Assembly: GCA_009859145.1 (NCBI GenBank)
Contig: VRVR01000011.1
Span: 140,292 to 204,291 of the forward strand
Origin: Andalucia godoyi And28
Taxonomy: Eukaryota; Protista; Jakobida
Direction of reading: 5' to 3'
Length of the DNA stretch: 64,000 nt
The notes beneath the pieces were generated by a model, which was not told the DNA's origin, ran no database searches, and saw nothing but the letters and a program-made list of their open reading frames with translations. Positions within the stretch are counted from its first letter, which is position 1; the number at the start of each line of letters is the position of its first letter. Positions 4,401 to 62,167 of the stretch are shown here, one piece after another. The position numbers and the translations under genes were made by a program.

Positions 4401-4853
4401 ATAATCGCAACCTGTCTTTCCAAGATGCCGAGAACCAAGAAACCCGTTGGTTCTCCCTCGTCGGAGACGGAAAGCAAGGACAAGAAGAAGATCGTCAGAC
4501 GGCAACTTGTTGCGCAAGCTGGTAATGATCAAAAATCACGAAGATGTGGTTGATTTGCGTTCGGAATGCGCTTTCTTTCAAGCCAGAGGACAAGAAGGGG
4601 CAATGGCAAAAGCGTCGTCAGGCCCGATGTGCAACGCCGCCGCCGACATTCTGTTTCTTCCAACGTTCATTTTTTTGAATGCTGAACCAATTGGGAAATG
4701 TGTTGGTTGCGATAGCTCTTTGATGCAGAGCAATCTGCATTGAAGAGTTGGTGCTCGCTCTAAATATTTAAATAAATAAATAAATAAATAAATGTGGGTT
4801 GGATCTGTCGCTTTGCCCGATGACCAATAATGATTCATGTTTTGGGCGAGCGG
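4401..4853 (+). mobile_element. Family X element, copy X1: internally deleted, probably TnpB/Fanzor-derived
   Basis: Homologous to 49562-49931(-) and 61975-62167(+): shares GAGAACCAAGAAA, TGATGCAGAGCAATCTGCATTGAAGAGTTGGTGCTCGC and the end CATGTTTTGGGCGAGCGG. Degenerate ORF MPRTKK..KKKIVRRQ and frameshifted RPDV/NAAADIL. Left boundary approximate. Confidence 0.65.
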
Positions 4854-5453
4854 AAAAGTGATCAAAAATGTCAATAACCTCCGCTCCAATCTCCCCGATT
4901 ACAGGATATCCAACGATGTGTTCAATAATTGAAAAACATCATAAAGAATTTAAAATGCTAGTCCTAAACACTGCTAGAAAAAACGCCAAGGCTTCTTTCT
5001 TGTATGCAGATATACATATGAATATATTAGTATACAATATTAGTATTATTATCCTTCCGTTCTTTCTGTTTCTGTGTTTACGCGACTTCTTTAATTTTAA
5101 GAAAGATACTCTTCTGTGTCGATCTTCTTTAACAGCAACCAACGACGGTACTTCTTCTTTTCTGGTGTTTCTTCGTGCATTCCCCCCTTTCTCTCTCTCT
5201 TCCCCCAACCTCTTCTGAACGTCGTACTTGCTGCGTATGCCGATTCAACGTAGACGGAGAAAAAGGAACCATACATAGGGAGCAGCAGGCTGTCTAGGGT
5301 TTTATCTTGCAGCTTGCATAGTTACCGACTTTGTGCGAGTTTCCCATAGACAAGCCGTGTCATTTAACAGATTTTTTTTATTTTCAGCGTTTTCCCTCTT
5401 CTCGTTCTGCTTGTCTTTCACTTCCTGTCGGTTGTGCTTGTTGCTGGTGATCG

Positions 5454-7307
5454 ATGTTCAAGGCACCTCAGAATCCCGCTACTGACCCGGGTCTGCAGTG
5501 GGCCCTTGTAGTGCATCTTGGAGCTGGAAGCCACGCCGAAGAGCGTCGAGCGCTGTATCGAGAGTGTGTTGCTTCTGCACTGTCTGCTGCATCATCGATC
5601 TTGTCTGGGCTTAGTGGATCAGATGAAGGTGCGAACGCGTCGTCTGAAGAGAACGGACAGAGTATCGGAGATCGGACTTTTCAATATTCGGAAAGTCGGC
5701 TGTGGGATCTTGCCGTGTCGGCGGTGTGCGCTGCTGTTGAGCAGCTTGAGAACAACCCGAGTACGAACGCTGGTTGCGGATCGAACTTGTCGCTGAAAGG
5801 TACTGTCGAACTGGATGCTTCCTTGATGACGAGCGATGGGCTTTGGGCCGGTGTAGGCTGCGTGCCCAAGGTGTCGAACCCCGTCCGGATTGTGCAGGAC
5901 ATGCTGCAGGTTCAGCATCAGCAGAGAACGTTGTCGTGCGGGAGAGTTCCTCCAATGATGTTGTGTGGAGAGGGAGCACTGCTCTATGCCATTGAACGCG
6001 AAAATTTAAAAAGGTATGTGTTGCCGTCGGATGCAAGCCTGAAATCGAGCTCTTCGATCGCGAATTTTGAGAGGTACCAGAAGATGCTCGAGGAGTCTGA
6101 GCTCTCTCAGCGCATAAAAAACGCTGCGCCATTGCAGTCCACAGGCATTCTATCTCCTCCGTGTTCTGCGGCGAGCTCGTTCCCGTCAGTGTCGTCGGCG
6201 TCGTCGAATTCATTGTCATCCCTGACCACAGTGTCCTCCACAAGGTCGCTGTCGGTTGCGTCTGCGCTGTCCTCAGCATCGTCTACATCTTCCCTGATTG
6301 CGCCGGATGGACAGCATTCCCGTGATGTGCAAAAGTCAGCGGCGGACAGCGGAGAACATTTGCATCTCAGCCCGACAATAGAGACTGCGGCCTCAGAAGG
6401 GCCGAATTGTCCTCCAGATGTGATGATGGACACTGTTGGAGCGGTTCTTATGCTTTGGTCCCCCCTTCTCAGTATCCCTATTGCTGTTTCGGCGGTTTCT
6501 TCTGGAGGCATTGCGATGAAGATGCCAGGCCGAGTTGGTGAGGCCGCAGTATATGGCGCAGGATGCTTTGCCGCTTCGTTTCCAGAAGAACGGACGCAGC
6601 ATCACAAGAGCCGTGTCGAAGAAAAGACAGCAAGATCAAGGAAGCGCCCTCGGTTGTCGCCGAGTTCCACTCCCGTCGACCCATCGAAGGATCATGACCG
6701 ACATGCAATTCCGGGCTTCAATGAGATCCGCGTGGATGGCGGCGCTGAAGTGGAATTTGATTTTCAGGAGCCGGTGAACAGCAGTTCGTCCTCGTCCTCG
6801 TCCTCGTCCTCCGTCTCCGGTTCCTCTTCTTCTTCTTCTTCTTCTTCTTCTTCTGGCTCCTGTTCCTCCTCGTCAGGATCTGCAATCGGATTTGTCTCTG
6901 GGATCAAATCCGCAAACGATCCATCGGAAGATGACGACAAGGATACGGAAGATGCGGTCCTCACTGCAGTCTCTTGCTCGGGCTGCGGGGAAGATATCAT
7001 GCGATATCAACTTGCATTCCGCGTTGCCCGCCCTCATTCGGATCTTGGGCGCATTCTGCAGGCTATGCCACATGTAACAATGGAGCGTGCTGCTGGATGT
7101 GTTCGCCTTGAGTATCGATATGGCCCAAGTGAAAACATCCATCGAATGCTGATCTCGTGTGCCCACACGACAAGAAGCATGGTGTATGGCTGGTGTACGT
7201 CCTCTTCGCCAAAACACGTCCACTTTCGCTTTTCAAAACGTGGAGAGGCTCTTCTGCCTATCAGCGACTCCGCGTGCATCGTATCCGTTGACCGTGTGAA
7301 GTTCTGA
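5454..7307 (+). CDS. TASP1: Threonine aspartase 1 (Taspase-1; Ntn hydrolase)
   Basis: VVHLGAG, TNAGCGSNL..GTVELDASLM, autocleavage site D/TVGAV, SSGGIAMKMPGRVGEAAVYGAG, AVSCSGCGE. Confidence 0.92.
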   Translation: MFKAPQNPATDPGLQWALVVHLGAGSHAEERRALYRECVASALSAASSILSGLSGSDEGANASSEENGQSIGDRTFQYSESRLWDLAVSAVCAAVEQLENNPSTNAGCGSNLSLKGTVELDASLMTSDGLWAGVGCVPKVSNPVRIVQDMLQVQHQQRTLSCGRVPPMMLCGEGALLYAIERENLKRYVLPSDASLKSSSSIANFERYQKMLEESELSQRIKNAAPLQSTGILSPPCSAASSFPSVSSASSNSLSSLTTVSSTRSLSVASALSSASSTSSLIAPDGQHSRDVQKSAADSGEHLHLSPTIETAASEGPNCPPDVMMDTVGAVLMLWSPLLSIPIAVSAVSSGGIAMKMPGRVGEAAVYGAGCFAASFPEERTQHHKSRVEEKTARSRKRPRLSPSSTPVDPSKDHDRHAIPGFNEIRVDGGAEVEFDFQEPVNSSSSSSSSSSSVSGSSSSSSSSSSSGSCSSSSGSAIGFVSGIKSANDPSEDDDKDTEDAVLTAVSCSGCGEDIMRYQLAFRVARPHSDLGRILQAMPHVTMERAAGCVRLEYRYGPSENIHRMLISCAHTTRSMVYGWCTSSSPKHVHFRFSKRGEALLPISDSACIVSVDRVKF

Positions 7308-7826
7308 GAAGACATGGTACGGTATCCTATTATTGTGCAGTCCGGGCTTTGTTAGTTTCATAGCAGCCGTTCGTCTAGTTATTCATTTTTATCTTGTCTC
7401 ATATTCATCATCATCATCTTCTTCTTCATCTTCTTCTTCTTCTTCATCTTCTTTTTCTTTTTGCTCCTCCTCCTCTTGGAATCGGCGCAGCAAATGCGCA
7501 CGAATGCATGCTACAGACGTGAGCCCTCCTTTTCTTTTTTTCGGATATTGTAAACGTACATCATAATATACAAGCACACTGACCGTCAGTCCTCATCTGT
7601 CCACGGATTCTCTTTCTCTTCTCAAACCGCCCCGGTTAGTATTCATTCATCTTGTACCTTCCCTTTGTTTTCCACATTCTTGGCATTGTTGGTGGTGAAC
7701 ACACGACAAAAAAAAAAAGAAAGAAAGAAAAAAGAAAAGAAGAGACAGAAGAGAAAGAAGAAAAAAACACACGTCCAGGTTCACAGTCTGACGTGGACAA
7801 ACAGCTATCACCCCAACATGCACACG

Positions 7827-8678
7827 CTATGAAGGAAGAGATTGTCGCCCGTGGAATGAGCTTCCTCGTCGCATATTCCAAGACTTGCGCGCCTCGCCGG
7901 AAGACCTGTTGAAATCATTCGAATAGCGATCATCCGTCATGGGCACGTAGCCGCCCTCTGGAGTGCAAAATTGCGGGAACTGCGCCACGAAATTCGCATA
8001 TCCGCTCTTGAGCAGGACGACGTTAGGCCAGCACAGTCCTGGATACGCATTTCGGTTGATGGTTCGATCCAGGGATCTCAAATGGCCGAGCATTCGCGGA
8101 CCTCTCTTCACCGAATGCTCACAGTGGAAAACGACCAAAGTATCCGGAGTGATGAGCGGTATCTGCTGGCCAATGTGTCCGAAAAAGAAGGACTCGACTG
8201 CGCTAGGATCAGGCAGGTTGACCGCGTTCGCAATATGCCCACCTTCAAACTCGTACCCGTATCGACAATCGATGATCAATACTCGTTGTTGCTGCTGCTG
8301 CACCGTGTGCGTCTGCGAGAGCAGACTTGCCAAAGCGTATGCGGATATTGTATTACATTGATCCTGCATCCCCTCAATCGAAATAGGACACGGAAACGCC
8401 TCGGGAAGCACAGAAAAACGAGAAAAATGTGAATGTGTCTCGACCAGCGCACTTGGAATCACAGAGCTCGTGGATCGCCGAGAAAGCCCTGAAACAGGAG
8501 GACGTCTGCACTCGCGATCCGGTGAAGCACGGCGATAAGGCGAAGTACTGGAAAGCAGCGGTGGAAGATTCTCCGACATTTCTCCATTTGGACTCGAAGG
8601 AAAATCACTAAACAGCGGCTTCCGAGGAGACGGCGAAGCTCTGTTTACAGATCGGATGGAAAGAGGAGAGTCAAACAT
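7827..8678 (-). CDS. CDC25: CDC25-type M-phase inducer phosphatase (rhodanese fold)
   Basis: IIDCRYGYEFEGGHI, active site HCEHSVKRGP (CX5R), LLKSGYANF; N-terminal SP-rich region. Confidence 0.92.
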   Translation of the reverse strand: MFDSPLSIRSVNRASPSPRKPLFSDFPSSPNGEMSENLPPLLSSTSPYRRASPDRECRRPPVSGLSRRSTSSVIPSALVETHSHFSRFSVLPEAFPCPISIEGMQDQCNTISAYALASLLSQTHTVQQQQQRVLIIDCRYGYEFEGGHIANAVNLPDPSAVESFFFGHIGQQIPLITPDTLVVFHCEHSVKRGPRMLGHLRSLDRTINRNAYPGLCWPNVVLLKSGYANFVAQFPQFCTPEGGYVPMTDDRYSNDFNRSSGEARKSWNMRRGSSFHGRQSLPS

Positions 8679-9238
8679 CTTGCACGGCCAAAACAAACAA
8701 AGCTGATGATGACGATGATGACGATGATGATGATGATGAATACAAAAGTACTTTTTTTAATCAAATAGTAAAAAATAATAATAAAAAAGAACAAAGCAAT
8801 AATGATCGAATGATCGAATGAAACACAGAGAAATGTTTGGTTTTCAAAATGGTGAAAAACCGGTAAACATTATAAAGCTGCGTTGAGAGCGGGTAAGGTT
8901 TCCCGACTTTTCTGAACTCCGAAACACTTGCTGCTTAGTCTGCTCGTGCTACCGTGCAATTTTCGAGTTTCCATCTGCCTGAAACCACAAAACCCTGAAT
9001 ATCATCGGATAGTACGGATGAGTTGACAGCCGTCGACATTGCCGTCCCCCTGCAGATTGCTGAAACTCATTGGACGGGACGTCTGCTTGAGGCGCAGCAT
9101 GCGAGCTAAATGTTTGGGAGAGATTTGGGTTGGAGAGTAGTGGTGCTGTTACGTTCTCAGCTTCGACTTTATTATTATTATTTATTTATTATTATTATTA
9201 TTTATTTTTTTTGATTTGCTTTGCGGCTGTAGGACAGT

Positions 9239-10384
9239 ATGGAATTGGAAGAAGACGAGACGGGGCTTCTTGTCCGGCCATCGGACGCTGGAAGCGAATC
9301 GCAGAGCAGCGATGTTGTTGCTGTGAGCGTGGATGGCGCGATTGCTGCGCCGAATGCCCATTCTGAGAATGAGGAGACCGGCGCTGCTTCTGATTCGACG
9401 TCTTCCTTGACTCCGGCGCAGAGACGAAGGCGTTTGTTATCGAAGCCTGAGCAGTGGTCAAAGTCGGTTCTGTCCGTTGCGAGACCGGTTCTGATCACCA
9501 TGATTCTCACGCTGGTGATGATCAGGCTCCTGGCTTCAGACTCTTCGACGGGTAGCTCGTACGGAAATGCAGAAGACGGCGATGATGCGGGCTCTGGAAG
9601 CGATGATCAGAGCGACTCTGAGAAGATTGGAGTTGCACTGTTGTCTGCACTGTTTGTGATTGCAATCATGTTTGTTGCGCTGGTGGTAATGGCTTTCTTG
9701 TACAAGAGAGGATACATCAAGGCGATCATTGGATACATGATGGTGTCTACGTTTATCCTGTACGCAATGCTCGGCTCTATGTGGTTTTACGGTATTTGCT
9801 TTGCTCTTCGAATTCGTCTGGACTGGTTTACATTCGCCTTTTGCATATCCAATTTTGCCGTTGGTGGAAGCGTGTGCTTGTTCTACTACGCTCGTCATGA
9901 GCTCTCCCAGTGCTATCTGATCGTATCCTCGGCAATGGTCGCTTGGTGGCTCTCGTTTCTGCCTGTGTGGACCACCTGGGCCTTGCTCATTCTTCTAGTC
10001 TTGTTTGACATTGCCGTGGTTCTCGCGCCCAAGGGACCGCTGAAAACCATTGTCGAAACTGCCCAGGAGCGCAACGAACCAATTCCGGCTCCCGTGTACG
10101 AAGGAGATGGGCTGAAACTTGGACTCGGCGATTTCATCTTTTACACTCTGCTGGTTGCCCGCGCCGCACTGGCTCCCTCTGGCGGGTTTTTGCTCTCTGC
10201 GTTTGTTTGTGCCGTTTCCATATTCGCCGGCCTCGGCTTGACTCTCGTTGTCCTCGGCCTGTATGGGAAAGCTCTGCCAGCGCTCCCAATTTCTATTGTG
10301 CTCGGCCTCATCTGGTACGCTGCTGCCGTCTACCTTGTTTCTCCGTTTGCAGTTGAACTTGCCCTCTATCGAATTGCAGCGTAG
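9239..10384 (+). CDS. PSEN: Presenilin (gamma-secretase catalytic subunit)
   Basis: Multi-TM protein with LFD (TM6 Asp), LGLGDFIFY (GxGD) and KALPALP motifs. Confidence 0.95.
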   Translation: MELEEDETGLLVRPSDAGSESQSSDVVAVSVDGAIAAPNAHSENEETGAASDSTSSLTPAQRRRRLLSKPEQWSKSVLSVARPVLITMILTLVMIRLLASDSSTGSSYGNAEDGDDAGSGSDDQSDSEKIGVALLSALFVIAIMFVALVVMAFLYKRGYIKAIIGYMMVSTFILYAMLGSMWFYGICFALRIRLDWFTFAFCISNFAVGGSVCLFYYARHELSQCYLIVSSAMVAWWLSFLPVWTTWALLILLVLFDIAVVLAPKGPLKTIVETAQERNEPIPAPVYEGDGLKLGLGDFIFYTLLVARAALAPSGGFLLSAFVCAVSIFAGLGLTLVVLGLYGKALPALPISIVLGLIWYAAAVYLVSPFAVELALYRIAA

Positions 10385-12283: not shown

Positions 12284-12312
12284 TGTGTGTGTGGGTGTGT
12301 GTGTGTGTGTGT
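12284..12312 (+). repeat. (GT)n microsatellite upstream of the MFS gene
   Basis: Directly visible. Confidence 0.8.
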
Positions 12313-39172: not shown

Positions 39173-39304
39173 CGTAGTAGTCCGCGCAGCAATCTTTTCC
39201 GTCCATTCCGGATATCCGGATTCCAGTTGACAGTTGGCGACTTGCCGTAGTCGTGCGTGCACGGAAGACAATGAGTTTTCCTCGCCTGCAGCCGCACGGA
39301 GTCG

Positions 39305-39445
39305 GCGTACATTTGGTCCACTAACCACGGATAAGTATCACTGATTACCCATAATCAATGCTGCAACCCAACAACATGCATAACATGACTGGGAAGGGGT
39401 AGGCCCCAACACGCCCCTCGGCATGAGAGACGTTCTTACGAGAGA
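39305..39445 (-). ncRNA. Putative Fanzor omegaRNA scaffold (copy A)
   Basis: Conserved 3' region with GCCTAC (39399-39404) and a 9-bp hairpin (39339-39360), ending at the element boundary; overlaps the ORF 3' end as in TnpB/Fanzor loci. Confidence 0.65.
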
Positions 39446-39990
39446 TGCAGATGTTGCGCGTGCCGTTCCAATCGCGGTCGATCGTGCAATTGCATGATGG
39501 GCAACAAAACACCTTGGCGATCGTCGAAGACAGTTTGTCGGCAGCTGCTCTGCGGAGCGCATCGTCATGCACGTCGCGGGCAACGAAGCAGGTGGTGATG
39601 GCTCGTTCGACGTCGGCGAGGCAGTGTAGTGGTTTGATATTTATCCGCTGTAGTGGGTACATATCGCCAAATGTCGACACATAACGTTTGCAGCTTGGTT
39701 GCGCCCATGCAACCGTTGAGGTGAATCTGTGCCTTTCCTGTCTTTTGTGTTTCAATAAATTGGAGACCTTTTTCTTTATTGGTTATTGCCGTTACAGCAG
39801 TACATGCGATGGGAGCCGGCGTGGATGCTGCGGATCGTTCCTGGCGGCGGTGGAGATGTCATGGGTCTTGCGCGGCGTTGCGGGCGTGACGTACATGGTG
39901 CGCTGCACGGACAGTAAAATAAAGATATGAAATGAGCGTCGCTGTGCGAGAATGCAACGCGGCTGTGTGTTTAGAGGGATTTCATGAATC
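39305..39990 (-). mobile_element. Family A Fanzor2/TnpB-derived non-autonomous element, copy A (686 bp)
   Basis: Encodes KVFCCPSCNCTIDRDWNGTRNI (zinc-finger half plus RuvC-III). Left ~80 bp and right ~140 bp are shared with 53334-53568; ends at AATGTACGC. Confidence 0.88.
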
Positions 39991-41055: not shown

Positions 41056-41119
41056 ATGCACTTCTCGCACGATCCACCGTTGAGCACACATGATGTTGTT
41101 CCCAAGCTGAACTGTCGTA

Positions 41120-48867: not shown

Positions 48868-49071
48868 GTTTTTGTTTTTGTTTTTTGCTTTCGTTTTCAT
48901 TTTTGCGAGTTTTGTTTGTTTATTGGAGACAGGTCAATTGCACGTCATTTATCATTATTGCCAACATGTAGTTCTATCCATTTCTATCACTTATTTCATC
49001 ATGTGTTTTTTGTTTGTTGTTTTTGCTTTTTGTGGCTTTGTGCGTATGCTCCCGACACTTCTCCTTGTTTC

Positions 49072-49370
49072 GCCTACATTGTCCGTTAAACATGAGCTAC
49101 TCATTGCTGACAACCCATACATGCACTCTTGCAATCCGAACAGAATGTGAATTCAATTCAGTAGGCGGCGGGCCCCGGTACGCCGAGGCGCTCCTCAAAT
49201 GGATTTTTTTAATTAAATTTATTGTTTGTACGCACCACCATTCCAGTCTCGGTCCAGGCGGGCTGATGTGAATGGGAAAAAAGACGAACGGAAGAATAGC
49301 ATTGTCTGAAATTTGTGGGTGAGTGGGGGTAAGAGTGGGTTGTGAAAGCGTAAGAAGTTTGGGGGACATA
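49072..49370 (-). mobile_element. Family A element, copy D (degenerate)
   Basis: Minus strand encodes LDRDWNGGA (49237-49254), then GCCTAC (49161-49166), TGCATGTATGGGTTGTCAGCAATG (similar to A and B) and terminal CAATGTAGGC. Left boundary uncertain. Confidence 0.75.
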
Positions 49371-49561
49371 TCTTGAAAAAGAGATGGAGTGTGGTTTGCT
49401 TACATCAAGGCAAGAGAATGTCATTGCCTGAATGATGACCCATTCTTTCATTCTGCTGTTAAAAAAACACTAATTGTGTCTTTTACATGTTTAATATAAT
49501 GCTGCTTTGCGAGCGACGGCTATCGAGCCTGTGACTGTTGCATTACGAAGCCGCTTTCTTG

Positions 49562-49931
49562 CCGCTCGCCAAAAACATGGATCATTACTGATCATCGGCT
49601 AAGCTGTCACGGCAGACAGATCCAAGTCACATGTTTTGTGTTTATTGGAGGGGCGAGCACCAACTCTTCAATGCAGATTGCTCTGCATCAAGGGGTCATC
49701 GCTTCTTCTTCTTGCTCTCGGCCTCCGACGAGAGGGGATCAACGGTTTTCTTGGTTCTCAGTGTTTGTTGGAGAGATCCCTCTTTGGAGCCATGATATGC
49801 TTTGTCTTTGATGAAAGATGCTGTTTGAGGGCTCGATTATAATAATGAGAGACAAACAGAAGATGGTAGAGAGAAGGGAAAATGTGAAAGAATGAAAGAA
49901 ATTTATAGACTAGACTACGATAGGAAAATCG
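49562..49931 (-). mobile_element. Family X element, copy X2 (370 bp)
   Basis: Both ends match 61975-62167; internal ORF remnant (MAPKR..RTKKTV..ESKKKKR) matches X1; TATAAAT near the left end. Confidence 0.75.
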
Positions 49932-50028
49932 CGTCTCCATAGGGTTAGATGAACCAGCTCCTGGTATGAGGTTGCTTGTTCAATGTTTCATACAACAAAA
50001 AAAAACCGTCAACCATCAATCTTTCGAC

Positions 50029-50440
50029 GCCTACATTATGCACTGAACATGCATATCTTTTCGTAGATATGCATACTCAGTCTTGCATCCCGTTGCCGGG
50101 AAGGGGGTAGGCCCCAACACGCCTCACGGCATTCTTCAGATAGATGTTCCGCGCTCCGTTCCCAATCTCGATCAATCGGTGAGCCACTTTCTCAGCGTGG
50201 CACGTTGCTCCTGAGAAGGGTGCATTTTGATGCTGACGGCCCTAGCAGCAGGCGCTTTCGTGTCCTCAGTTGCAGCGATTGATGTACCTGGAGATACGAG
50301 AGGAAGAGGCGGCAGGCGTAGTGACACGTGGTCTCTTAGGAGGTCTGCGGGACCTAGGAGGCCCTGTATCGGGCGGCGTAGGCGTAGGCGAATGCGTCAT
50401 CCCAGCGCGCTCACGCCCATATTTGAATTAATAAAGTGGA
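50029..50440 (-). mobile_element. Family A Fanzor2-derived element, copy C (N-terminal HTH fused to C-terminal RuvC-III)
   Basis: MTHSPTPTPP..PPKRPR (NLS-like), frameshift, RAVSIKMHPSQEQRATLRKWL (HTH_OrfB-like), deletion, IDRDW/NGARNIYLKN; then GCCTAC, a 16-bp hairpin (50043-50080) and AATGTAGGC. Left boundary uncertain. Confidence 0.88.
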
Positions 50441-50686
50441 ACCAACGAATGATAGAATAGATGGCTACGGATGTTGCGTTAAAGAGTGTCAGGGCCTGTG
50501 TCACCGGCTGAATTTTGGCCGAGCGTGTGTAAGCACGAATTCCCCTGTGAAGCAAACGTGCTGGTGTCGGCCAGTATTGACCGTGTCTGTTTATGTACAC
50601 TTTCCTTCTGTATGCATGACAATAACGTGTTTTTATTTGACGGTCCTTTCTCATACCCAAGTACATACAGACCTCCACAGCTGCAA

Positions 50687-53333: not shown

Positions 53334-53568
53334 GATCATGAAATCCCTATAAACACGCCGCCGCGTTGCATTCTCGCACAGCGACGCTCATTTCATATCT
53401 TTATTTTTACTGTCCATGCAACGCGACATCTATCTTAAGAACGTCTCTCATGCCGAGGGGCGTGTTGGGGCCTACCCCCTTCCCAATCATGCTATGCATG
53501 TTGTTGGGTTGCAACATTGGTTATGGGTGATCAGTGATGCTTATCCGTGGTTATTGTACAATGTAGGC
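53334..53568 (+). mobile_element. Family A element, copy B: 235-bp ORF-less (omegaRNA-only) derivative
   Basis: Left ~80 bp match 39990-39910 and include TATAAA; right ~140 bp match 39445-39305; only IYLKN remains of the nuclease C-terminus. Confidence 0.88.
53430..53568 (+). ncRNA. Putative Fanzor omegaRNA scaffold (copy B)
   Basis: GAGGGG/CCCCTT stem with GCCTAC (53470-53475) complementary to terminal GTAGGC (53563-53568); 9-bp hairpin at 53515-53536. Confidence 0.7.
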
Positions 53569-53646
53569 ACCGTCGCCACCCACTCCGACACCTATTTCAT
53601 TTTCATCTTCCGTTTTTCTCCCTCCAACTGACGAAAACTCTTGCGC

Positions 53647-56496
53647 TCATTCTCCACTGCGATAAAACATATTAAAGTTGATTCGCATCAGAAACGGTGA
53701 CAAAAACGTTGCGTTTCCCGTGGCAACCATTTTGGTGATAATGGTAATCAGCACATCCACAGCAGCAGAGAATCGATCACGAATGACAGGGACCGTTTGC
53801 AAACCAAATGAGAATTCTCGAATCAACTGCAATATTTTTGATACCTGATTCCACACAACACGCATCTGAGGAGTCACCAGGCAGCGATTGGCAGCGCCGC
53901 GAACATAGGTGCGGTGAATTTCTACGAGTTGCTGCAAGTCTCTTGCCTTGTCAATCTTATCGGATAAATCTGCCCACGTTATTCCAATTGCCTCGCTCAT
54001 CAAATAATAAAGAAGCGCGTCCAGGAATTGGATCATGGAGAATCGCAGCATGAGTGCTCCAAATGATCCAGAAACACTCTCCATGCTTTTCTCTCTGCAC
54101 AGGTGTCGCGCATGATGGATTTGAAGAAGAAATCGGAAGACGGATTGATAGTGCGAAACACAGTCGCGATCTAACAGGGAGGATATCGGATACGGAACAT
54201 CGTACGAAAAGGACAGACAATCAATCGCATCAAGAGTGGAGAAGCCATTCTTGTGTCTGCGCGTGTCCGAAATGCCAAGACTTGTTGCTGTCGTGGAGGC
54301 GGTGATCGAAGACTGGTCGTTCTCCATCGAAATGTTCACCCGAAAACGATCAAGATACTCTCTGTGAAGATAACCGCAAGTGTCTACCGATTCGACAAAG
54401 AAGCCAGTAATGGTGGAAGAAAGGAGCATTCCGGATGTGGAAAACAGCCGAGAATAGAATTCGTAGCAAAGGTCCCCCTGCTCCATAAAATACACGGCGC
54501 GAAGTGTCGCCAAATGAATCAAGACATGGCAGCGATCCTTGATGAGCGTTGAGAAGGAGCTGGATAAGAAAGATACTTGGAGGTTCACACGATCGGCCAA
54601 GTCCTCATGGAGGTGGTCTACCAATCTGGATGTGCGAGCCGCCACACCGTAAGAAGGCGATTTCGGAGACGCCGCTGAGACCGGAGAATAGACTATTCGA
54701 GGTTGTGAATTTTGTCGCTTCGCAGTGGAACGCAATGACGTTAGTGAGGACTCTGCAAAGTTCTTCTTCCACAGTGGACGGGGAGGCGTTTGCATCGAAG
54801 ACACGGCATGCTTGCTTGGCGGGGCGCCAGAAGATGTTTCCGTGTCAGTAGCGTCCGCGTCTGCGTCTCCATCCTCCTCTCCGCTTTCTTTCCACGATGT
54901 GCGAATGTGCTGCAGCAGTAGAACATTCAAACCCGCCTCGTAGATTGAACCCGCCATCTTCGACGGAATGAATATTGGAACCTTGTCAGGCGCCAGAACG
55001 AACCCGCTGGACTCGTCATTCCGAACAAAAAACTCTTCAAAAGGATCGTGCAGGAATCCCTCGAACACCCAAGTCTCAACAAGCTGCACAAATGGCGCAA
55101 ACGCCAGATTCAACATTCCATACATGTCCCCACGATACAAAAGATCGGCTGCGCCTTGACGCTCGAGATCTTGTACGTGATCAAAGATGGAAGACAGGAT
55201 GTCGGCCGATCTTGATCCAGCTGTGACATGGCGCTGGCAGATTGAATGGTAAACGGACCATTCCAGAGAAATCTCTTCCGCAAACGTCCTGAGACGCAAA
55301 ATAGAAGGCAACTTCACCATGAAGTCTTTCTCAAAATCCGACAGAGCTGCGAACAATTCATGTCTTCGGCTTTCGACATGATATGCGAATCCTGCTGCGG
55401 ACCACCCCGCCAACTGAGAAACAGTCTGCAAAGACGATCGCAGGAAGGATGCCGCCCTTAAAACCTCGGCAATAAACGATCCTGTTATACCCGGAGTTGC
55501 ATTGGCCACCACAATGCGGTGAGGAACATATCTGTAAATTCCCAGATCCGCGTGCCATTCCGCAAACTCAACGTCTGCACCACGCAGCACTCCGCAACAT
55601 TCCCGAATGAGCTCCTTGGGCTGCACGACTCGCACATGCTCATATACACGGGAATCCGATGCGTTTGTGAACAGTTGTTCGGTGGGTACCGACGATGTTG
55701 ATACAACTTCACGAAGCATCAGGTCATCCAAGGGCTGTGAAAAGAACGATGGTCTCTCTTGACCGAAAGTTCCAAGAAACGACGCAAACAACGTGTCTTG
55801 ATTCGATTCCTGAATTGCACTTTTCTCGGCTGGAAAGTTGCGAATAGGCTCTGTGGTCGAGACGCTCTCGCCGTCTGAAGCCGTGTCCGTGGAACCCATC
55901 TCGTTCGATTCAAAGTCACCCTCTTCACCTTCCTGGGAATCATGGTCAAAATCCAGGGCCCATTCACCAAGATCGCCATCCTTAGCTGACAGTTCATCCC
56001 GAATGAAAGCCGGAAGCTCGTGAATTGGAACGACTGCAGCATTCTCGAAGCGATCCAAGGACGCAACTGAATCCAGATACCGCTGCTTCAGCATATCATC
56101 AAAAGACTCGAAAAACTCTGACATTTCCTCTGCTGATTTTTCCAAAGGCTTATAAGACACCTCCAGGAGAACAAGCAGTATAGACGCATTCACTCCATCC
56201 ATTGGATTTCCAATGTCTGTTCGCAATACGTGATTCATGGCACGTTGGAGTCGGCTTGCGATTTCCAATTTCGAGTCCAATTCAAATCGATCTATCATCC
56301 CCACATATCTCTTTTCAACACTCGCTCGAGATGGGGTGAGAAAAGTATGCTCCGTAATAGATTTGTACGCATAATCAAACAACGTGGCAATTTGCCCATC
56401 GTCTTGGACTCCCATTCCAAGTATAAGTGATTCCAGCAATGCCCGCAATTTCAAGTCTCGCTGCGAAGCGTATCGCGACAACATAGGTCTAGCCAT
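53647..56496 (-). CDS. TUBGCP5: Gamma-tubulin complex component 5 (Spc97/Spc98 family)
   Basis: GCP5-like N-terminus (FDYAYKSITEHTFL..EKRYVGMIDRF), WVFEGFLHDPFEEFFV, LRAVYFMEQGDL, YQSVFRFLLQI. Confidence 0.85.
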   Translation of the reverse strand: MARPMLSRYASQRDLKLRALLESLILGMGVQDDGQIATLFDYAYKSITEHTFLTPSRASVEKRYVGMIDRFELDSKLEIASRLQRAMNHVLRTDIGNPMDGVNASILLVLLEVSYKPLEKSAEEMSEFFESFDDMLKQRYLDSVASLDRFENAAVVPIHELPAFIRDELSAKDGDLGEWALDFDHDSQEGEEGDFESNEMGSTDTASDGESVSTTEPIRNFPAEKSAIQESNQDTLFASFLGTFGQERPSFFSQPLDDLMLREVVSTSSVPTEQLFTNASDSRVYEHVRVVQPKELIRECCGVLRGADVEFAEWHADLGIYRYVPHRIVVANATPGITGSFIAEVLRAASFLRSSLQTVSQLAGWSAAGFAYHVESRRHELFAALSDFEKDFMVKLPSILRLRTFAEEISLEWSVYHSICQRHVTAGSRSADILSSIFDHVQDLERQGAADLLYRGDMYGMLNLAFAPFVQLVETWVFEGFLHDPFEEFFVRNDESSGFVLAPDKVPIFIPSKMAGSIYEAGLNVLLLQHIRTSWKESGEEDGDADADATDTETSSGAPPSKHAVSSMQTPPRPLWKKNFAESSLTSLRSTAKRQNSQPRIVYSPVSAASPKSPSYGVAARTSRLVDHLHEDLADRVNLQVSFLSSSFSTLIKDRCHVLIHLATLRAVYFMEQGDLCYEFYSRLFSTSGMLLSSTITGFFVESVDTCGYLHREYLDRFRVNISMENDQSSITASTTATSLGISDTRRHKNGFSTLDAIDCLSFSYDVPYPISSLLDRDCVSHYQSVFRFLLQIHHARHLCREKSMESVSGSFGALMLRFSMIQFLDALLYYLMSEAIGITWADLSDKIDKARDLQQLVEIHRTYVRGAANRCLVTPQMRVVWNQVSKILQLIREFSFGLQTVPVIRDRFSAAVDVLITIITKMVATGNATFLSPFLMRINFNMFYRSGE

Positions 56497-56968
56497 GACA
56501 TTCAGCGATGCTTATTTTCTCTCCGCTACCCAAGTGCTGTTTTTGAAGCCTTTTCGCCTCTTTATCCGTTTCAATAAACAATTCCTTATTGATTGATTCT
56601 TTGTTTATAATTTCATTTTGGAGTTTTGTCTTTGGATGAAGAAAACGGAAGAAATGGAAATGGCGGGAGACTTTTCCAATTTCGTGAGGTGCGTCTACGG
56701 TACTGACGTTTCTTGTCTCGCGCGACTTGTCTTCCGAGAGTTTACTGTATTTTTTTCTCCACTTGATTCATCATTATTGGCTTTACTCAACCAAGGATCG
56801 TTGTGAGATGGTGATGCGGTGAGATGCGGTCCGCGGGAAATCGAACAGCATGCGGTGCCAGAAGAAGATGTCGGGCAGCACGAACGGAGGAAGAAGAGGA
56901 GGGGGGCGGGAATATATACCAAAACGACACCTTTCAAAAAAACCCTCCCCCCGACAAGACCGCTCGGC

Positions 56969-58106
<1,138 letters not shown>

Positions 58107-58420
58107 TTTTCTTCTTTCAGTGCCCTGACTTTTCCCCCCAGCCCCGCAGACAAGAATGAAGAAACACTCGTGGGAACTTGGAAAACGTGTCGTGCACCAG
58201 CGCTGCAAGTGGGTTTTCACACATACACACTCTCTCACACAGTCAAGCACTGTATCAGCTTGATGCTTACCAGTCCCGAAATGGGTCACGTTTTGGAGAA
58301 AACACTATGCACGTGGAAATTCGTTTCCCTTTTCTTTTCTTTTCTTTTCTTTCTATTCTATTCAGAGAGACAGAGAGAAAGAAAGAAAGAAAGAAAGAAG
58401 GAGAAAAGGTGGTATTGGAA

Positions 58421-59062
58421 ATGTCTCTTAAATCCGAACTGCATGCATCCTTGGAAAAGCTAGAGGCGAATGCATTGACGCTGTTCGCTGCGATTTCTCA
58501 ATACGAAGGAGCCTCTGCGAAAGTTCCCGAGAAGTTGGTGCGTGTGTTTGAAGAGAATGATCGACTGCAGGAATTGCTGAGCAAATTAAAGCAGCACCAA
58601 GAGCGGCAGTCGCATTTGGAAAAGCTGCAGAAGGAATCACAACAACTGGAAAAGCAGACTCGAAAGACGATTCACACGCTGCTGGAGGCACAGACCGAGC
58701 TACTCAACGCTCAAGATCTTTGCTCTGCAGTACTCCGAAGACAGCCTCAAAAGATCCCGGTGGATACTCTTGTCGAGTATGCTCGACAGATTAGGTTCAC
58801 ATCCATGGCTCCATCGTGGTGGCAGCCCGGTCTTGAACTCGGACTGTACAAGCCACCCGCACCCCGAAAGAACGTGGAAGTGCAGCAGAGTTGTTTGTGG
58901 CCACACTTGCAAGACGCTGGCCAGACCTTGTCGGGCACTGCTTTGGGTCATCCAGAAAAGGTAGAACACGAAGAGATCCACGTTTCGGATGAAATGTTCG
59001 CTGCAAGTCGGAGATCACGAAAGCGTGATCGACAAGAAGAGTTTGAAGACGAGTTCATTTAG
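58421..59062 (+). CDS. MED4: Mediator subunit 4
   Basis: N-terminal coiled coil then VDTLVEYARQIRFTSMAPSWWQPG..YKPPAP. Confidence 0.85.
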   Translation: MSLKSELHASLEKLEANALTLFAAISQYEGASAKVPEKLVRVFEENDRLQELLSKLKQHQERQSHLEKLQKESQQLEKQTRKTIHTLLEAQTELLNAQDLCSAVLRRQPQKIPVDTLVEYARQIRFTSMAPSWWQPGLELGLYKPPAPRKNVEVQQSCLWPHLQDAGQTLSGTALGHPEKVEHEEIHVSDEMFAASRRSRKRDRQEEFEDEFI

Positions 59063-59302
59063 AGATCCTGCACTTGTCAACTGCGACGCGCACACGCGTG
59101 TATACTATGCCGAAGAGCACAATATCAAAGGAGCTGAAGAAACTTTTCAGTTTTATATACATTGATTTCGAGGATATGCTGCTGTGTTTTCTGTTGCTCT
59201 TGTTCTGGTTGTTGACAATTTTCTTTCTTGCTTCCATTCCGCGGTGCTCGCTTTTGCGGTCTTTTGGGCCTGTGAAAAAGAAAAATGCTGCCGTAATCAT
59301 GT

Positions 59303-60241
59303 CTATGGGATTACATTCGCAATCACGCATGGGATTGCATCTTCCAACGGCACTTCCAGAGTGAATGAGATCCCGATGTACTTGATAGTGACGGATCCGA
59401 GGAAGGACATTCCGGTCACCCTCTCATTGACGCACTGTGTGTACACCGCAGAATATTCCGGGCCCGTCTTTGTATCCTTCTGCTTGACGACGTACTTTGT
59501 TGTTTTCTTCGCTGGCAATGATTCAGATCCTTTCTCAATTTCAAAGAGGACGAGCCCCGAGGGTGAATGAGTGGCCTTCAGAAGCAGCTTTTGAATCTCC
59601 ACTTTGAAGTAGTTGTCATTTTGAATATTCAAAAACATATCCAAATCGTATTGAATGACGAAGTTGTTTCCCTCTTGTCGCAGCGTGAATACAGACTCCG
59701 ACACGTTCTTCTCCTTGATTTTGGGAATACGGGGAAAGATAAAGAACAAAATTAAGGCCACGGTTGCAATCGACAGAATGAATCCTAAAAAGCACGAGAG
59801 AAACAGTTTTGTCTTTTTGTGTCGGATGTACGACCCTTCCTTGGGCTTTCCGTCCGAAAGACGTGGGTCGGCGGGTCCGGGCATGGCAACCGCAACAGTA
59901 TCAGGGTTTTTGTTGTCCACTGGCTTTCCACTGGCGTATGCATCACCGTCCCTGTAGCTATTGTATGCTGCCGTGGAAGACGAGGCATCCTCTACTGGAT
60001 AGTAGAGAACGCTCGGAGGCACGGTGGGAGGCACGTAACTGGATGCGCTGGATGTCGGGGCCATGTTTGTTGCAGAGGCGGTCGTTGAGGGAGTGGTCAG
60101 GGGAGGGGCAGAAGGAGCGGTTTGGGAGGCGACGGGCGGGACGACTCCAGATCGAGAAGATGCGGAAGACGGCAAGGACGACAGTGACCGATTGCTGTTC
60201 GAAACCGTCGATGTTTTGGATTCAAATGGATACTTGTGCAT
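59303..60241 (-). CDS. TMEM106/LEA_2-like type II membrane protein
   Basis: Disordered S/P-rich N-terminus, KKTKLF + TM + FFIFPR, beta-rich lumenal domain with NIQNDNYF. Confidence 0.7.
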   Translation of the reverse strand: MHKYPFESKTSTVSNSNRSLSSLPSSASSRSGVVPPVASQTAPSAPPLTTPSTTASATNMAPTSSASSYVPPTVPPSVLYYPVEDASSSTAAYNSYRDGDAYASGKPVDNKNPDTVAVAMPGPADPRLSDGKPKEGSYIRHKKTKLFLSCFLGFILSIATVALILFFIFPRIPKIKEKNVSESVFTLRQEGNNFVIQYDLDMFLNIQNDNYFKVEIQKLLLKATHSPSGLVLFEIEKGSESLPAKKTTKYVVKQKDTKTGPEYSAVYTQCVNERVTGMSFLGSVTIKYIGISFTLEVPLEDAIPCVIANVIP

Positions 60242-60684
60242 GACTCTGAACGCGAAACTTGTTGCCGATACTGCATATATTCAGCACTATTATTACCTTC
60301 GCAAGAATCATTTTCTTCTTCTTTTCGTCATGCGCTTCATTCGACTCGGCGGCAACACGAACTCGGCTGTCCGTTAAATGCAGTTCAAGTTCTTGTGCTC
60401 TCGAAGTATCGAATGAGCTGGTGCGGAAGCTCTCACTCTCTGTCTTTTTGCCCCGCAACCCCCCTTTTCCCCCCGAGGTCCACTGGAGGTCGGTGACATT
60501 GGAAAGTGTCGCTGCATGCAAGAAACGATGGGAGAGGGTGGAGAGCAATAAGTAAAATAATAATTCAAAAAAAAAAAAAAACAAGAAGCATCAGCTGAAT
60601 GTTCCATGTTCCTGTATTGAAAGAGCCCCAGGAGAGGGGTGGAAAGAAAAGGAAATGCTTTGAAATACACGATGCGATCCCTAT

Positions 60685-61839
60685 TTACGTCTTTTCCCAT
60701 TCTTCCAGGACTGGATACCAGGGCGGGATGTCCTTGTCTCTGTACATGTAGTCGACAAGAATTTCCTCATCTTTGGCAATGTCCTTGATCGCCTGCACAC
60801 ATCGAATGTGACCAAATCGCGGATGCCAGACGCGGCCGTATTTTGCATTCATCATGCTCTTCTTTGGAGCGTGGTTCGCTTTGTGGCCCAAGGATGCTCG
60901 ATAGTAGGACGTGGAATCGAACGGAACGGGAACGTCAAGATCCTCGTCGTCGTCGTGCAGAGAAATCACATTCTTTGCTCGATCATAATCCCAAGACTCA
61001 ATTTCCCTGTCTGGGACCAGACGTCCATTATAGTACGAGCAGACATCGCCCGTCTTCAGAGCAACTTTGGCAAACAGACCCTCTCCGCTTCCTTCAATGG
61101 GAGACATCTTGACATAAACTCTGATCTGCTCAAGCGGATCTTCTGTTAGTCGGCATGATTCCAAGTCGTTTTCACAAGGCTCGCAAACCGGAACAGTGAG
61201 ATCCAGCGTGGGATATGTGTAGACACACTTGTCTCGGACGAACTCCCCATCCTCGAATTCACCCTTGACAAGACCCCCATCTTCAATTCGAAGAGTGCCA
61301 TGTCCATGCCGCAATCCGCTCTTGTATCCGCCTTCATACACTATTCTCCCATCTTCGTCCTTTTCAACAGCATCATCGCACGTCATTTCCCCATCCACAA
61401 AAGATCCAATCACGACAATTCCCGAAGATTGATGCAGTTCCCCTCGGCCCTGAGCAACATCGTCCACAAACGAAGCCTGGATCAAGACAAATTCAAACTC
61501 CCTCTCTTCTTCCTCTCCATCCTCTTCATCATCGCTGCCTAACTTGTCCGATTCGCTGTCCCCAACTCTCTCTGCAGACTCTCTATCACGTCTCGCCCGG
61601 TGTTCGTTTGGTGCGGTATCGGCATCCTGCGGATCGACATCCACTGCATCGTCCCCCACTGCATCGTCCCCTACAACGGCGGCATCTACCATTTCCTCGC
61701 GTGCAGGGAAAACCGTCATTTTCAGTTGTCCTTGACCTTGTTTTCTGTTCTGACTGTCGACTTTGCCCTCAAACTCGTACAGCATCCCGTCTTCTTCCCA
61801 TTGAAGAGTCACTCGGCGCAGCTTTTGCTGGTTCCTCAT
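60685..61839 (-). CDS. SETD7: SET7/9-like lysine methyltransferase (MORN repeats plus SET domain)
   Basis: MORN repeats (YEGGYKSGLRHGHG), SGEGLFAK, SLGHKANH, HPRFGHIRCV..DEEILVDY, PPWY. Confidence 0.85.
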   Translation of the reverse strand: MRNQQKLRRVTLQWEEDGMLYEFEGKVDSQNRKQGQGQLKMTVFPAREEMVDAAVVGDDAVGDDAVDVDPQDADTAPNEHRARRDRESAERVGDSESDKLGSDDEEDGEEEEREFEFVLIQASFVDDVAQGRGELHQSSGIVVIGSFVDGEMTCDDAVEKDEDGRIVYEGGYKSGLRHGHGTLRIEDGGLVKGEFEDGEFVRDKCVYTYPTLDLTVPVCEPCENDLESCRLTEDPLEQIRVYVKMSPIEGSGEGLFAKVALKTGDVCSYYNGRLVPDREIESWDYDRAKNVISLHDDDEDLDVPVPFDSTSYYRASLGHKANHAPKKSMMNAKYGRVWHPRFGHIRCVQAIKDIAKDEEILVDYMYRDKDIPPWYPVLEEWEKT

Positions 61840-61974
61840 TTTTTCCCAAGCTGTCGTCCAAACACAGGAAGAGAGGAAAAACACTACGGGAGAGGAAGAA
61901 AGAGAAGAAGAAAGAGAAGGGAAGAAGGAAAAAAGAAGGGGGAAAAAGGAGAAACGTTTGAACATCAGACAATA

Positions 61975-62167
61975 CGATTTCCTTACCGTAATCTAGTCTA
62001 TAAATTTCTTTCATTCTTTCACATTTTCCCTTCTCTCTACCATCTTCTGTTTGTCTCTCATATTTATAATCGCGCCCCTCAAATAAACACAAAACATGTG
62101 ACTTGGATCTGTCTGCCGTGACAGCTTAGTCGATGATCAGTAATGAAACCATGTTTTTGGCGAGCGG
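61975..62167 (+). mobile_element. Family X element, copy X3: 193-bp ORF-less derivative
   Basis: Left end (CGATTT..CTATAAAT..) and 3' scaffold (AAAACATG..CTGTC/GACAG..CATGTTTTTGGCGAGCGG) are nearly identical to X2, with the ~180-bp ORF remnant deleted at a TCG..CCCTC microhomology. Confidence 0.75.

Follow-up and report, generated by a model that had tools for sequence, protein, structure and literature searches.

The window analysed here is a stretch of 64 kb from the nuclear scaffold VRVR01000011.1 of the jakobid Andalucia godoyi. It holds three copies, in two lineages, of a repeat family named X, which are best read as defunct, non-autonomous remnants, shortened by internal deletion, of a DNA element that coded for protein. 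The copies and their features are the following:

4430..4853, + strand: X1, securely homologous between 4430 and its 3' end (4853), the 5' boundary being uncertain
4425..4550, +: N-terminal part of X1 (MPRTKKPVGSPSSETESKDKKK... in the ATG frame), which is basic and NLS-like
4507..4743, +: coding-like C-terminal region of X1, 78 codons in frame 0, with 'NAAADI'
4720..4743, +: X1 hairpin 1 (TTGATGCAGAG-CAA-TCTGCATTGA), 10 bp with the stop codon within
4753..4760, +: X1 closing long-range stem, 5' strand (GCTCGCTC)
4844..4853, +: X1 closing stem, 3' strand (GGGCGAGC) and terminal GG, the end of the element
49562..49931, - strand: X2, the most complete copy
49907-49901, -: TATAAAT in the X2 5' module
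49793-49791, -: X2 ATG
49759-49702, -: X2 N-terminal piece
49668..49691, -: X2 hairpin 1, including the stop TGA (49670-49668)
49652..49658, -: X2 closing stem, 5' strand (GCTCGCC), 97 nt from the element end
49562..49570, -: X2 terminal GGCGAGCGG, the closing-stem 3' strand, with the stem stopping 2 nt before the boundary
61975..62167, + strand: X3, 193 nt long, in which the 5' 103 nt are joined to the 3' ~90 nt
61999-62005, +: X3 TATAAAT
near 62071-62079, +: X3 deletion junction

X2 runs from the 5' module through the ATG, the N-terminal piece, a deletion junction and the last ~10 codons into the 3' module. It is 93% identical to X3 over 103 nt and 97% identical over 74 nt (by BLASTN, 92.7% over 109 nt and 95% over 100 nt). 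The two copies have both ends in common (5' CGATTT(T)CC...TCTATAAATTTC and 3' ...CATGTTTTTGGCGAGCGG) between unrelated flanks. X3 is X2 minus a further ~177 nt, deleted between two similar short motifs; the ORF pieces and hairpin 1 are gone, and little of the closing-stem 5' strand is left. A search of the whole window with nhmmer --max returned no fourth copy, and no further copy was present in 7.3 kb of extra scaffold leftward of the window.

The preliminary description read the three copies as a series of growing deletions with a TATA left end, which holds for X2 and X3 and fails for X1. The homology of X1 to the other copies is confined to 4430-4487 (58 nt of the N-terminal piece, 83% identical to X2 49759-49702) and to the 3' ~145 nt (4709-4856; 72% to X2, 73% to X3). 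The start of X1 had been placed at 4401, but 4401-4429 has only the 7-mer ATAATCG in common with the family, so that membership of this segment is not demonstrable. An HMM of the 5' module matched X2 and X3 only, with no match at X1. Since its homology falls in two pieces and lacks the 5' module, X1 is, on sequence grounds, a diverged relative that was 5'-truncated or rearranged and not simply the least-deleted copy.

The sharp common 3' end reported earlier was confirmed. GGCGAGCGG occurs exactly three times in the 64 kb, each time at an X 3' end (chance expectation 0.41; three occurrences reached in 1 of 100 shuffles), and the flanks diverge within 4 nt past the end (AAAAGTG in X1, CAAGAAAG in X2, AAAGAGG in X3). 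As had been described, reading X1, X2 and X3 by eye showed neither terminal inverted repeats nor target-site duplications, and the element is taken to insert without them; the copies carry no poly(A) or simple-repeat tail. Folded as single-stranded DNA, the left end is unstructured. The two left flanks known for X (GACG and AATA; n=2) have no common motif as a TAM candidate, and the two left flanks of family A likewise show no clear agreement, a sample size that gives the comparison no power.

Conservation of the 3' module is uneven. X1 and X2 are identical at 39 of 39 positions in the block formed by hairpin 1, the linker and the first (5') strand of the long-range stem (permutation p = 4e-4) and at 9 of 9 positions of the terminus, versus ~70% identity with 22 gap columns in the enclosed interior. 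Hairpin 1 and the two strands of the terminal stem are thereby set apart from the rest of the module. The pairing ATGCAG/CTGCAT, noticed previously, belongs to hairpin 1, whose 10 bp extend across the stop codon in X1 and X2; X3 has lost it by deletion. The terminal stem is 6-8 bp long; in X1 and X2, GCTCGC(C) at -101/-97 pairs with (G)GCGAGC and stops 2 nt short of the boundary, with U-G in X1 where X2 has C-G, while X3 retains CGCC only. Of the other stems proposed earlier, AAAACATG/CATGTTTT pairs fully in X2 and X3 and with two mismatches in X1, where CTGTC/GACAG has lost its 3' half by a 9-nt deletion. The inner helices are lost or weakened in X1. Checking for covariance, as had been suggested, gave two compensatory pairs (GACT/AGTC to GGGT/GCCC in X1), both within one 4-bp helix, and no further covariation; for these three copies in two lineages the shuffle control, at 107/500, was uninformative. 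Fold stability against shuffles was z = -4.7 for X1, -2.7 for X2 and -0.1 for X3. Tested singly, the terminal stems were only marginally beyond chance (p = 0.03-0.18).

Coding remnants are best seen in X1. Its C-terminal 78 codons terminate within hairpin 1 at the TGA shared in the family (4741-4743) and have a coding score of +0.13, a value reached by 0.7% of intergenic chunks (host genes, 0.24+-0.09). For the first 34 codons the coding signal falls in frames 1/2 and not in frame 0, as expected from an out-of-frame internal deletion. The full 112-codon open frame is not significant (p ~0.05 in forward frames, 0.23 in six frames), and the protein ends in CVGC-x9-H, loosely resembling a zinc knuckle. 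The motif 'NAAADI' had been taken as a degenerate link to TnpB, a proposal that was not borne out. Searches of the X frames against Pfam, NCBIfam, PHROGs and PDB sequences gave no TnpB, Cas12, Fanzor or RuvC match at E<=10. Even the most favourable reading of X1, across a 1-nt frameshift ('RPDV-NAAADIL'), gave no TnpB/Cas12/Fanzor match at that threshold, whereas a comparably decayed family-A relic, used as a control, was picked up by 4/4 of these searches. X1 has no CxxC pair upstream of 'NAA'. Its 78-aa piece had no relative among 1.84 billion representative proteins or in a word-indexed search, and an X homologue was absent from all proteomes searched, the EukProt A. godoyi set included.

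The window also holds at least five genuine TnpB-like relics, and no other kind of mobile element is recognisable there or in the adjoining 7.3 kb. A1 matches Pfam Cas12f1-like_TNB (9e-5), NCBIfam IS607_TnpB (0.005), a PHROG transposase (7e-4) and, weakly, Cas12m/Cas12f chains in the PDB. A3 retains the motifs 'MHPSQEQRATLRKWL' and 'GNGARNIYLKNAVRRVGAYPLP', A4 'DRDWNG' and A5 'CPSC...QDWNGAHNI'. Like X, these relics (A1/A2; A3 and a copy at L021:28-458; A4/A5) occupy intergenic niches, and X2 sits between A3 and A4. In both groups a leader at the 5' side precedes a basic N-terminal stretch, the interior is deleted, and a short C-terminal remnant is followed by a structured 3' module with a sharp end; neither group has terminal inverted repeats or target-site duplications. 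In at least four of the relics the terminal stem is laid out as in X, a pairing of 6-7 bp with a partner ~90-100 nt upstream and a stem ending 0-3 nt from the boundary: GCCTAC at -87 to -102 pairs in A2, A3, A4 and A5 with GTAGGC 0-3 nt before the end, and A5 carries a compensatory pair (GCCTGC/GCAGGC). Their 3' modules fold with z between -1.2 and -3.3, and X1 and X2 are at least as strong. The A relics, however, have kept CxxC...DRDWNG..NI motifs and match TnpB models, which X does not, and the 5' strand of the A-type stem lies inside the ORF (codons G-A-Y-P), whereas that of X lies 10 nt past the stop codon. No significant DNA similarity was found between X and family A. The earlier view of X as a second, independent mobile-element family unrelated to family A is therefore upheld at the sequence level.

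The best single guess, and a tentative one, is that X descends from a third TnpB/Fanzor-type (IS607-like) element of A. godoyi, one that had diverged strongly. This reading draws on the genomic context, the shared build, the terminal geometry and the conservation pattern, and further on fold stability, the coding remnants and the two compensatory changes. Fanzor2 and IS607-type TnpB elements (e.g., ApmFz2, PDB 9B0L; PMC11832414) resemble X in lacking terminal inverted repeats and target-site duplications and in an ORF with a basic, NLS-like N-terminal stretch. They also have a structured region of ~150 nt that overlaps the ORF 3' end and extends to a sharp right end, a long-range pairing of the last few nucleotides before the flank, and a variable, dispensable interior (for X, as judged from sequence). 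In solved Fanzor2/TnpB complexes, a guide-adjacent long-range pseudoknot with nucleotides -4 to 0 forms the conserved omegaRNA core, and long inner stem-loops are dispensable (PMC11832414). The terminal stem of X occupies the position of that pseudoknot (PMC11832414), and the conserved core and variable interior seen between X1 and X2 fit this picture. The X pairing, though, is a predicted nested stem of 6-8 bp and not a proven pseudoknot/triplex, and X differs from these elements in having no detectable RuvC/TnpB homology, no full-length ORF found and no definable TAM. The link is unproven because no nuclease gene has been tied to the copies. Against it also stand the orphan 78-aa piece, the missing CxxC, the small number of copies, the marginal single stems, the decay of the inner helices in X1 and the loss of hairpin 1 in X3. 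Non-autonomous IS200/IS605 derivatives (PATE-like) are, like X, short, reduced to both ends and free of inverted repeats and duplications, but IS200/IS605 depends on a subterminal hairpin at each end and on a fixed target/TAM at the left flank, whereas in X the left end is unstructured and the two left flanks differ.

A possible though less favoured explanation is that X represents relics of an unclassified DNA element (rolling-circle, Crypton-like or other) whose protein was unrelated to TnpB. The hairpin and terminal stem would then be a cis signal for end recognition or termination (in DNA or at an mRNA 3' end) and not a guide-RNA scaffold. Rolling-circle elements commonly mark their ends with a 3' hairpin and a conserved terminus. 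X has both, along with asymmetric ends and a copy (X1) that appears 5'-truncated, a frequent state of rolling-circle copies; the silence of the X1 C-terminus in searches that detected the control relic points the same way. Helitron ends (5'-TC, 3'-CTRR, A/T insertion) are nevertheless absent, X running from CGATTT to GCGG with A, C or A as the next base. Remnants of a Rep/helicase, a tyrosine recombinase or any other transposase were not found, and the likeness of the terminal stem to those of the neighbouring TnpB-like relics would be left unexplained.

It is rather unlikely that the copies arose from a non-LTR retrotransposon by internal deletion and 5' truncation, in the manner of RIME/ingi of trypanosomatids (Discoba), with the structured 3' UTR as the reverse-transcriptase recognition site. 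Such derivatives have in common with X the sharp 3' end, a 5'-truncated copy and a layout of 5' part plus 3' part, which is known in LINE deletion derivatives. The first 3-4 flank bases of X are A-rich (AAAA, CAAG, AAAG), and the CVGC-x9-H ending could be viewed, loosely, as a zinc knuckle. Yet X has neither the tail nor the duplication of these elements, and the window and the 7.3 kb beside it contain no reverse-transcriptase or endonuclease remnant. The exact 5' end of X2 and X3 lies ~25 nt upstream of TATAAAT, and a transcript started from that box would miss the 5' end of the element.

Least probable is an origin without mobility, in which segmental duplication or gene conversion would have dispersed pieces of a small gene from the host or a virus: the TATA-like box, leader, ATG and stop do stand in the expected order, X1 has its open frame, and transposon/viral-like sequences are mentioned for unplaced subtelomeric scaffolds in the A. 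godoyi genome paper (PMC7050145), but that frame is not significant, no proteome searched holds a homologue, the common ends are base-precise in three unrelated genomic contexts, and the nested deletions are typical of non-autonomous elements.

As reconstructed from the copies, the parent of X began with a short 5' module bearing a TATA-like box and a pyrimidine-rich leader, followed by an ORF with a basic, NLS-like N-terminus and a 3' module of ~145 nt. A strong hairpin lay over the stop codon, and a long-range stem of 6-8 bp linked the last nucleotides to a segment ~100 nt upstream. If X does descend from a TnpB/Fanzor-type element, the ORF would have encoded a RuvC nuclease, and the 3' module may be the remnant of an omegaRNA scaffold made as RNA. 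This RNA would have been transcribed with or from the 3' end of the ORF, running to the right end and reading on into the flank, which may have served as the guide. The guide-adjacent long-range stem would have been the core held by the nuclease, and mobility could have been provided in trans by an IS607-like recombinase.

Family X is genuine but small; its members are decayed, non-autonomous copies of an element. The preliminary description had grouped three copies in the window. The repeat itself is real, with X2 and X3 being 93-95% identical, but X1 is related to them far more remotely. Both ends are exactly common to X2 (49931-49562, minus strand) and X3 (61975-62167, plus strand), which lie between unrelated flanks. 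X3 corresponds to X2 less ~177 nt, the loss lying between two similar short motifs (CGAGCCCTCAAA and CGCCCCTCCAA). X1 (4430-4853, plus strand) aligns with X2 only at 4430-4487 (83%) and 4709-4856 (72%). It has no counterpart of the TATAAAT 5' module, so the TATA left end that had been assigned to the family is true of only two copies, X2 and X3. X1 is either 5'-truncated or rearranged. The sharp common 3' end was borne out: GGCGAGCGG occurs three times in the window, each time as the final nine bases of a copy, and any similarity between the flanks is gone within four bases. A search of the window and of 7.3 kb of additional scaffold to its left yielded no further copy. The layout of X2 is as follows.

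5' module of X2, ~140 nt: TATAAAT ~25 nt inside the end, followed by a leader rich in pyrimidines
ORF remnants of X2: ATG, ~30 codons for a basic N-terminus rich in Lys, Arg and Ser, a deletion junction, the final ~10 codons, TGA
Tail of X2, ~105 nt: from TGA to the element end

Relative to X2, X1 carries ~220 nt extra between the N-terminal piece and the structured 3' module. A 26-mer from the invariant block of X had no match in viral contigs or in metagenome contigs, and a 30-base gapped pattern of the 3' end had none in metagenome contigs. A 17-base pattern gave 17 viral-contig matches, a number judged compatible with chance for so short a pattern. At 62194-62204, 27 nt downstream of the right end of X3, lies the 11-mer ATTTCCTATCG, which matches the left end of X (CGATTTTCCTATCG); this is a single instance, and chance could account for the number of matches in the window. 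X3 also has an opposite-strand ORF with SET/MORN domains as its neighbour (interval 61839-61975): the first in-frame ATG of that ORF is 9 nt away, and X3 is ~135 nt upstream of the more plausible start (MRNQQ...). X3 therefore lies in the promoter or leader region of the SET/MORN gene.

The coding potential of X1 was scored by codon-usage log-odds trained on the host genes of the window. Host genes score 0.24±0.09 and intergenic chunks -0.27±0.23, with 0.7% of chunks reaching +0.13. The last 78 codons of X1 up to the shared stop (4507-4740, frame 0) are coding-like at +0.13, and the first 34 codons are coding-like in another frame, the ATG frame MPRTKKPVGSPSSETESKDKKK... Coding-like pieces in two frames are the remains expected of a longer ORF that has lost an internal segment out of frame. 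That X1 has a small intact gene in its open frame of 112 codons was also considered. This was rejected, as the frame is not significant against shuffles and codon scoring resolves it into two frames joined by a deletion.

A link between X and TnpB had been proposed from a degenerate motif in X1. The coding-like frame does contain a NAAADI stretch; at 31 residues from the C-terminus it stands where a RuvC-III motif should be, and a 1-nt frameshift would read RPDV-NAAADIL. With or without the frameshift-joined reading, no TnpB, Cas12 or Fanzor match was obtained at E<=10 in Pfam, NCBIfam, PHROGs or PDB sequences. The HMM comparison of X1 frames with TnpB/Fanzor models, which the preliminary description had recommended, returned nothing at E<=10 while detecting the control relic A1, a TnpB-like relic. 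The X1 frames, which hold only remnants of the parent ORF, gave no match to the split RuvC fold and zinc finger (CxxC...CxxC, D-x-NAA-x-NI region). The 78-aa piece had no match among 1.84e9 representative proteins and none in a padded word-indexed search. As a positive control, this family-A relic, of length and decay akin to X1 (A1; 39348-39782, minus strand), matched Cas12f1-like_TNB at 9e-5, IS607_TnpB (NCBIfam NF038280) at 0.005, a PHROG transposase at 7e-4 and, weakly, Cas12m/Cas12f chains. X1 lacks a profile match where this control has one, and thus the TnpB link as stated is not supported. An AlphaFold2 model of the 78-aa piece was unusable (mean pLDDT 40). hAT elements are characterized by inverted repeats and an 8-bp duplication. 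The stretch AADILFLP resembles a hAT dimerisation motif; this candidate was rejected, there being no Pfam match, no hAT inverted repeats and no 8-bp duplication.

Andalucia godoyi represents a deep branch of the eukaryotes, and its 20-Mb genome is compact and intron-poor. The window spans ~140292-204291 of the 409-kb scaffold VRVR01000011.1 (GCA_009859145.1) and contains many genes with few introns, the long ORFs all being ordinary host genes. No tRNA was found in the window, and no Rfam family at gathering thresholds across its whole length; at E<=1, the surroundings of X1 and X2 gave chance-level matches only. The NCBI record, at 2741-4177 of the window as over the whole scaffold, has gene models for predicted mitochondrial proteins only (IF-2, rhodanese, E2 acyltransferase and cobalamin adenosyltransferase). 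The IF-2 homologue encoded in the window stands alone in its protein cluster. The E2 acyltransferase product is present in the gene-position index and absent from the protein cluster collection. In the draft nuclear genome of this jakobid, repeats were masked before gene prediction (PMC7050145), and transposon ORFs are therefore missing from the A. godoyi proteome. The EukProt proteome of A. godoyi evidently lacks these ORFs. A padded protein search with the A1 relic found no annotated Fanzor in A. godoyi. No report of Fanzor from Andalucia or from jakobids in general was found in the literature searched, and A. godoyi is absent from the supplements of two Fanzor surveys.

The window holds further TnpB-like relics beyond A1/A2, namely A3, A4 and A5. 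These relics, a copy of A3 and the terminal pairing sites are listed below.

~50026-50470, minus strand: A3, a TnpB/Fanzor-like deletion relic with N-terminus MHPSQEQRATLRKWL and C-terminus GNGARNIYLKNAVRRVGAYPLP
L021:28-458, in the extra scaffold sequence 7 kb left of the window: copy of A3, 89% identical
49069-49311 (core), minus strand: A4, with DRDWNG within ARLDRDWNGG, ending in AATGTAGGCG
~156-412, plus strand: A5, with CPSC...QDWNGAHNI and CPSC...DLVQDWNGAHNINWKN, ending in AATGCAGGCG
39304-39407, 53467-53569, 50028-50115, 49071-49167 and 308-412: terminal pairing sites of the A-type relics

The N-terminus of A3 includes the NLS-like PPKRPRV and SIKMHPSQEQRATLRKWL. Its C-terminus, GNGARNIYLKNAVRRVGAYPLPGNGMQD, is followed by the stop codon and then a 17-bp hairpin, and its right end is sharp at ...AATGTAGGCGTC. 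A4 and A5 are ~73% alike. The best named match of the family-A relic was an IS607-type TnpB model, which suggests a Fanzor2/IS607-like ancestry. In A2, A3, A4 and A5, GTAGGC at the terminus is paired with a GCCTAC that lies 87-102 nt upstream; in A5 the pair is GCCTGC/GCAGGC, a compensatory change. GCCTAC in the A-type relics also forms codons for G-A-Y-P. This pairing has the look of the long-range contact beside the guide in their omegaRNA, the guide RNA of TnpB/Fanzor (OMEGA) systems. Relics of three elements, A3, X2 and A4, share one intergenic region of 1.6 kb (48868-50485), with X2 in the middle. The sole G/C homopolymer tracts of at least 10 nt in the 64 kb, G14 (4376-4389) and C13 (105-117), each lie just 5' of a relic. 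G14 is 40 nt before the X1 homology and C13 ~40 nt before A5; chance, non-templated addition or an artefact of assembly may account for the tracts.

The 3' module of X is built like the RNA tails of these neighbouring Fanzor-type relics. RNA folding gave z-scores of -4.7 for X1, -2.7 for X2 and -0.1 for X3, in which hairpin 1 is lost. The signal is carried by this 10-bp hairpin over the stop codon and by a 6-8 bp closing stem, in which GCTCGC(C) ~100 nt from the end pairs with (G)GCGAGC stopping 2 nt before the boundary. X1 and X2 are identical over hairpin 1, the linker and the 5' strand of the stem (39/39) and at the terminus (9/9). The interior enclosed by the closing stem is 70% identical between lineages with a 9-nt deletion, and X1 has a 13-nt (AAAT)n microsatellite expansion between the stem strands (4762-4793). 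A perfect run of 39 nt is unexpected at the divergence of X1 and X2 (permutation p = 4e-4). Of the nested pairings described earlier, hairpin 1 and the closing stem are invariant in X1 and X2, but the inner helices are only partly kept. One strand of CTGTC/GACAG is gone in X1, and AAAACATG/CATGTTTT has two mismatches there. The change of GACT/AGTC to GGGT/GCCC in X1 provides the sole two compensatory pairs, in one 4-bp helix, and the closing stem has one wobble change. The covariation check covered three sequences from two lineages and its shuffle control (107/500) was uninformative, so the structural conservation of the module is only suggestive. A hammerhead-like reading of CGATGA...GAAAC was rejected, as it is true of X3 alone.

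The comparison with OMEGA elements concerns architecture. In the solved complexes of Fanzor2 and TnpB, an upstream segment and nt -4 to 0 beside the guide form a long-range pseudoknot that makes up the conserved omegaRNA core, and the long inner stem-loops are dispensable (PMC11832414). The conservation of X, with invariant stem strands and hairpin and a free interior, fits this description. In X1 and X2 the upstream partner is located at -101 and -97, with 2 nt between the stem and the boundary; the individual p values are 0.03-0.04, and the pairing is a nested stem and no proven pseudoknot. The stop codon within hairpin 1, the module length of ~145 nt and the sharp end also fit the layout of a putative omegaRNA that would overlap the 3' end of the ORF, stop at the right end of the element and take the flank as its guide. 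The terminal-stem geometry of X1 and X2 is like that of A2-A5, whereas the sequences are unrelated. The 3' modules of the genuine A-type relics have z-scores of -1.2 to -3.3 and fold no better than X. The X scaffold had been described as unlike family A in sequence, and indeed no significant DNA similarity exists between X and A-type 3' modules. The resemblance is architectural only. A by-eye likeness of the two (CATGTT...GGCG) was considered as common descent and rejected, as the DNA similarity is not significant. A transposon-adjacent motif was sought in the left flanks. These differ between X2 (GACG) and X3 (AATA), X1 has no left end, and with n=2 the search has little power; the two left flanks of family A itself show no clear agreement either.

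On balance, X may tentatively be read as a third, strongly diverged Fanzor/IS607-like lineage. This reading is favoured by the genomic context, the shared build and the terminal geometry. It is disfavoured by the negative profile searches, the lack of a zinc-finger pattern, the lack of a common left-flank motif (n=2, a comparison in which family A itself would fail) and the tiny sample. X could instead be an unclassified element without inverted repeats or duplications whose protein is not of the RuvC type, which we regard as rather unlikely. The ends of X do agree with the first part of this alternative. As had been noted, no terminal inverted repeats or target-site duplications are present at the copies, and the left end CGATTTTCC... 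is not an inverted version of the right end ...GGCGAGCGG. X thus lacks the hallmarks of MITEs and other cut-and-paste elements. Single-stranded DNA folding revealed no pair of IS200/IS605-type subterminal hairpins: the left end is unstructured (-0.8 and 0 kcal/mol over 80 nt, with z-scores of -0.1 and +0.8), and the final 80 nt have z-scores of -0.4 to -1.4. The Helitron combination (5'-TC, 3'-CTRR, a hairpin 10-20 nt before the end and insertion between A and T) is likewise not seen in X. The ends are CG... and ...GCGG, the first bases of the 3' flanks are A, C and A, and a small hairpin (GATCA/TGATC) ~19 nt before the end is present in X2 only.

Derivation from a non-LTR retroelement is improbable. 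When X was compared with non-LTR and SINE-like elements, the 5' truncation of X1 was the sole compatible feature, to which the A-rich first flank bases may be added. Against this origin, X shows no duplication and, apart from 3-4 A-rich bases, no tail of poly(A) or simple repeats, and it has a common 5' end upstream of the TATA-like box. A more far-reaching alternative is that the parent protein of X had no detectable relation to TnpB and yet carried a TnpB-like 3' RNA module, with a stop-codon hairpin and a guide-adjacent long-range stem at the element end. X would then represent a jakobid RNA-guided transposon system that is independent or has diverged beyond recognition, which we consider very improbable. 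That the copies, with their sharp common 3' end, are non-mobile gene fragments is likewise very improbable.

With three copies, the evidence value of X is limited either way. If the Fanzor/IS607-like reading is false, X is an unclassified non-autonomous element that matters mainly for genome annotation. If it is true, Andalucia godoyi would hold at least three TnpB-type lineages, all apparently decayed. The omegaRNA of X would be wholly unlike that of its neighbours in sequence, with the terminal architecture kept. X would thereby help to define the true requirements of omegaRNA scaffolds.
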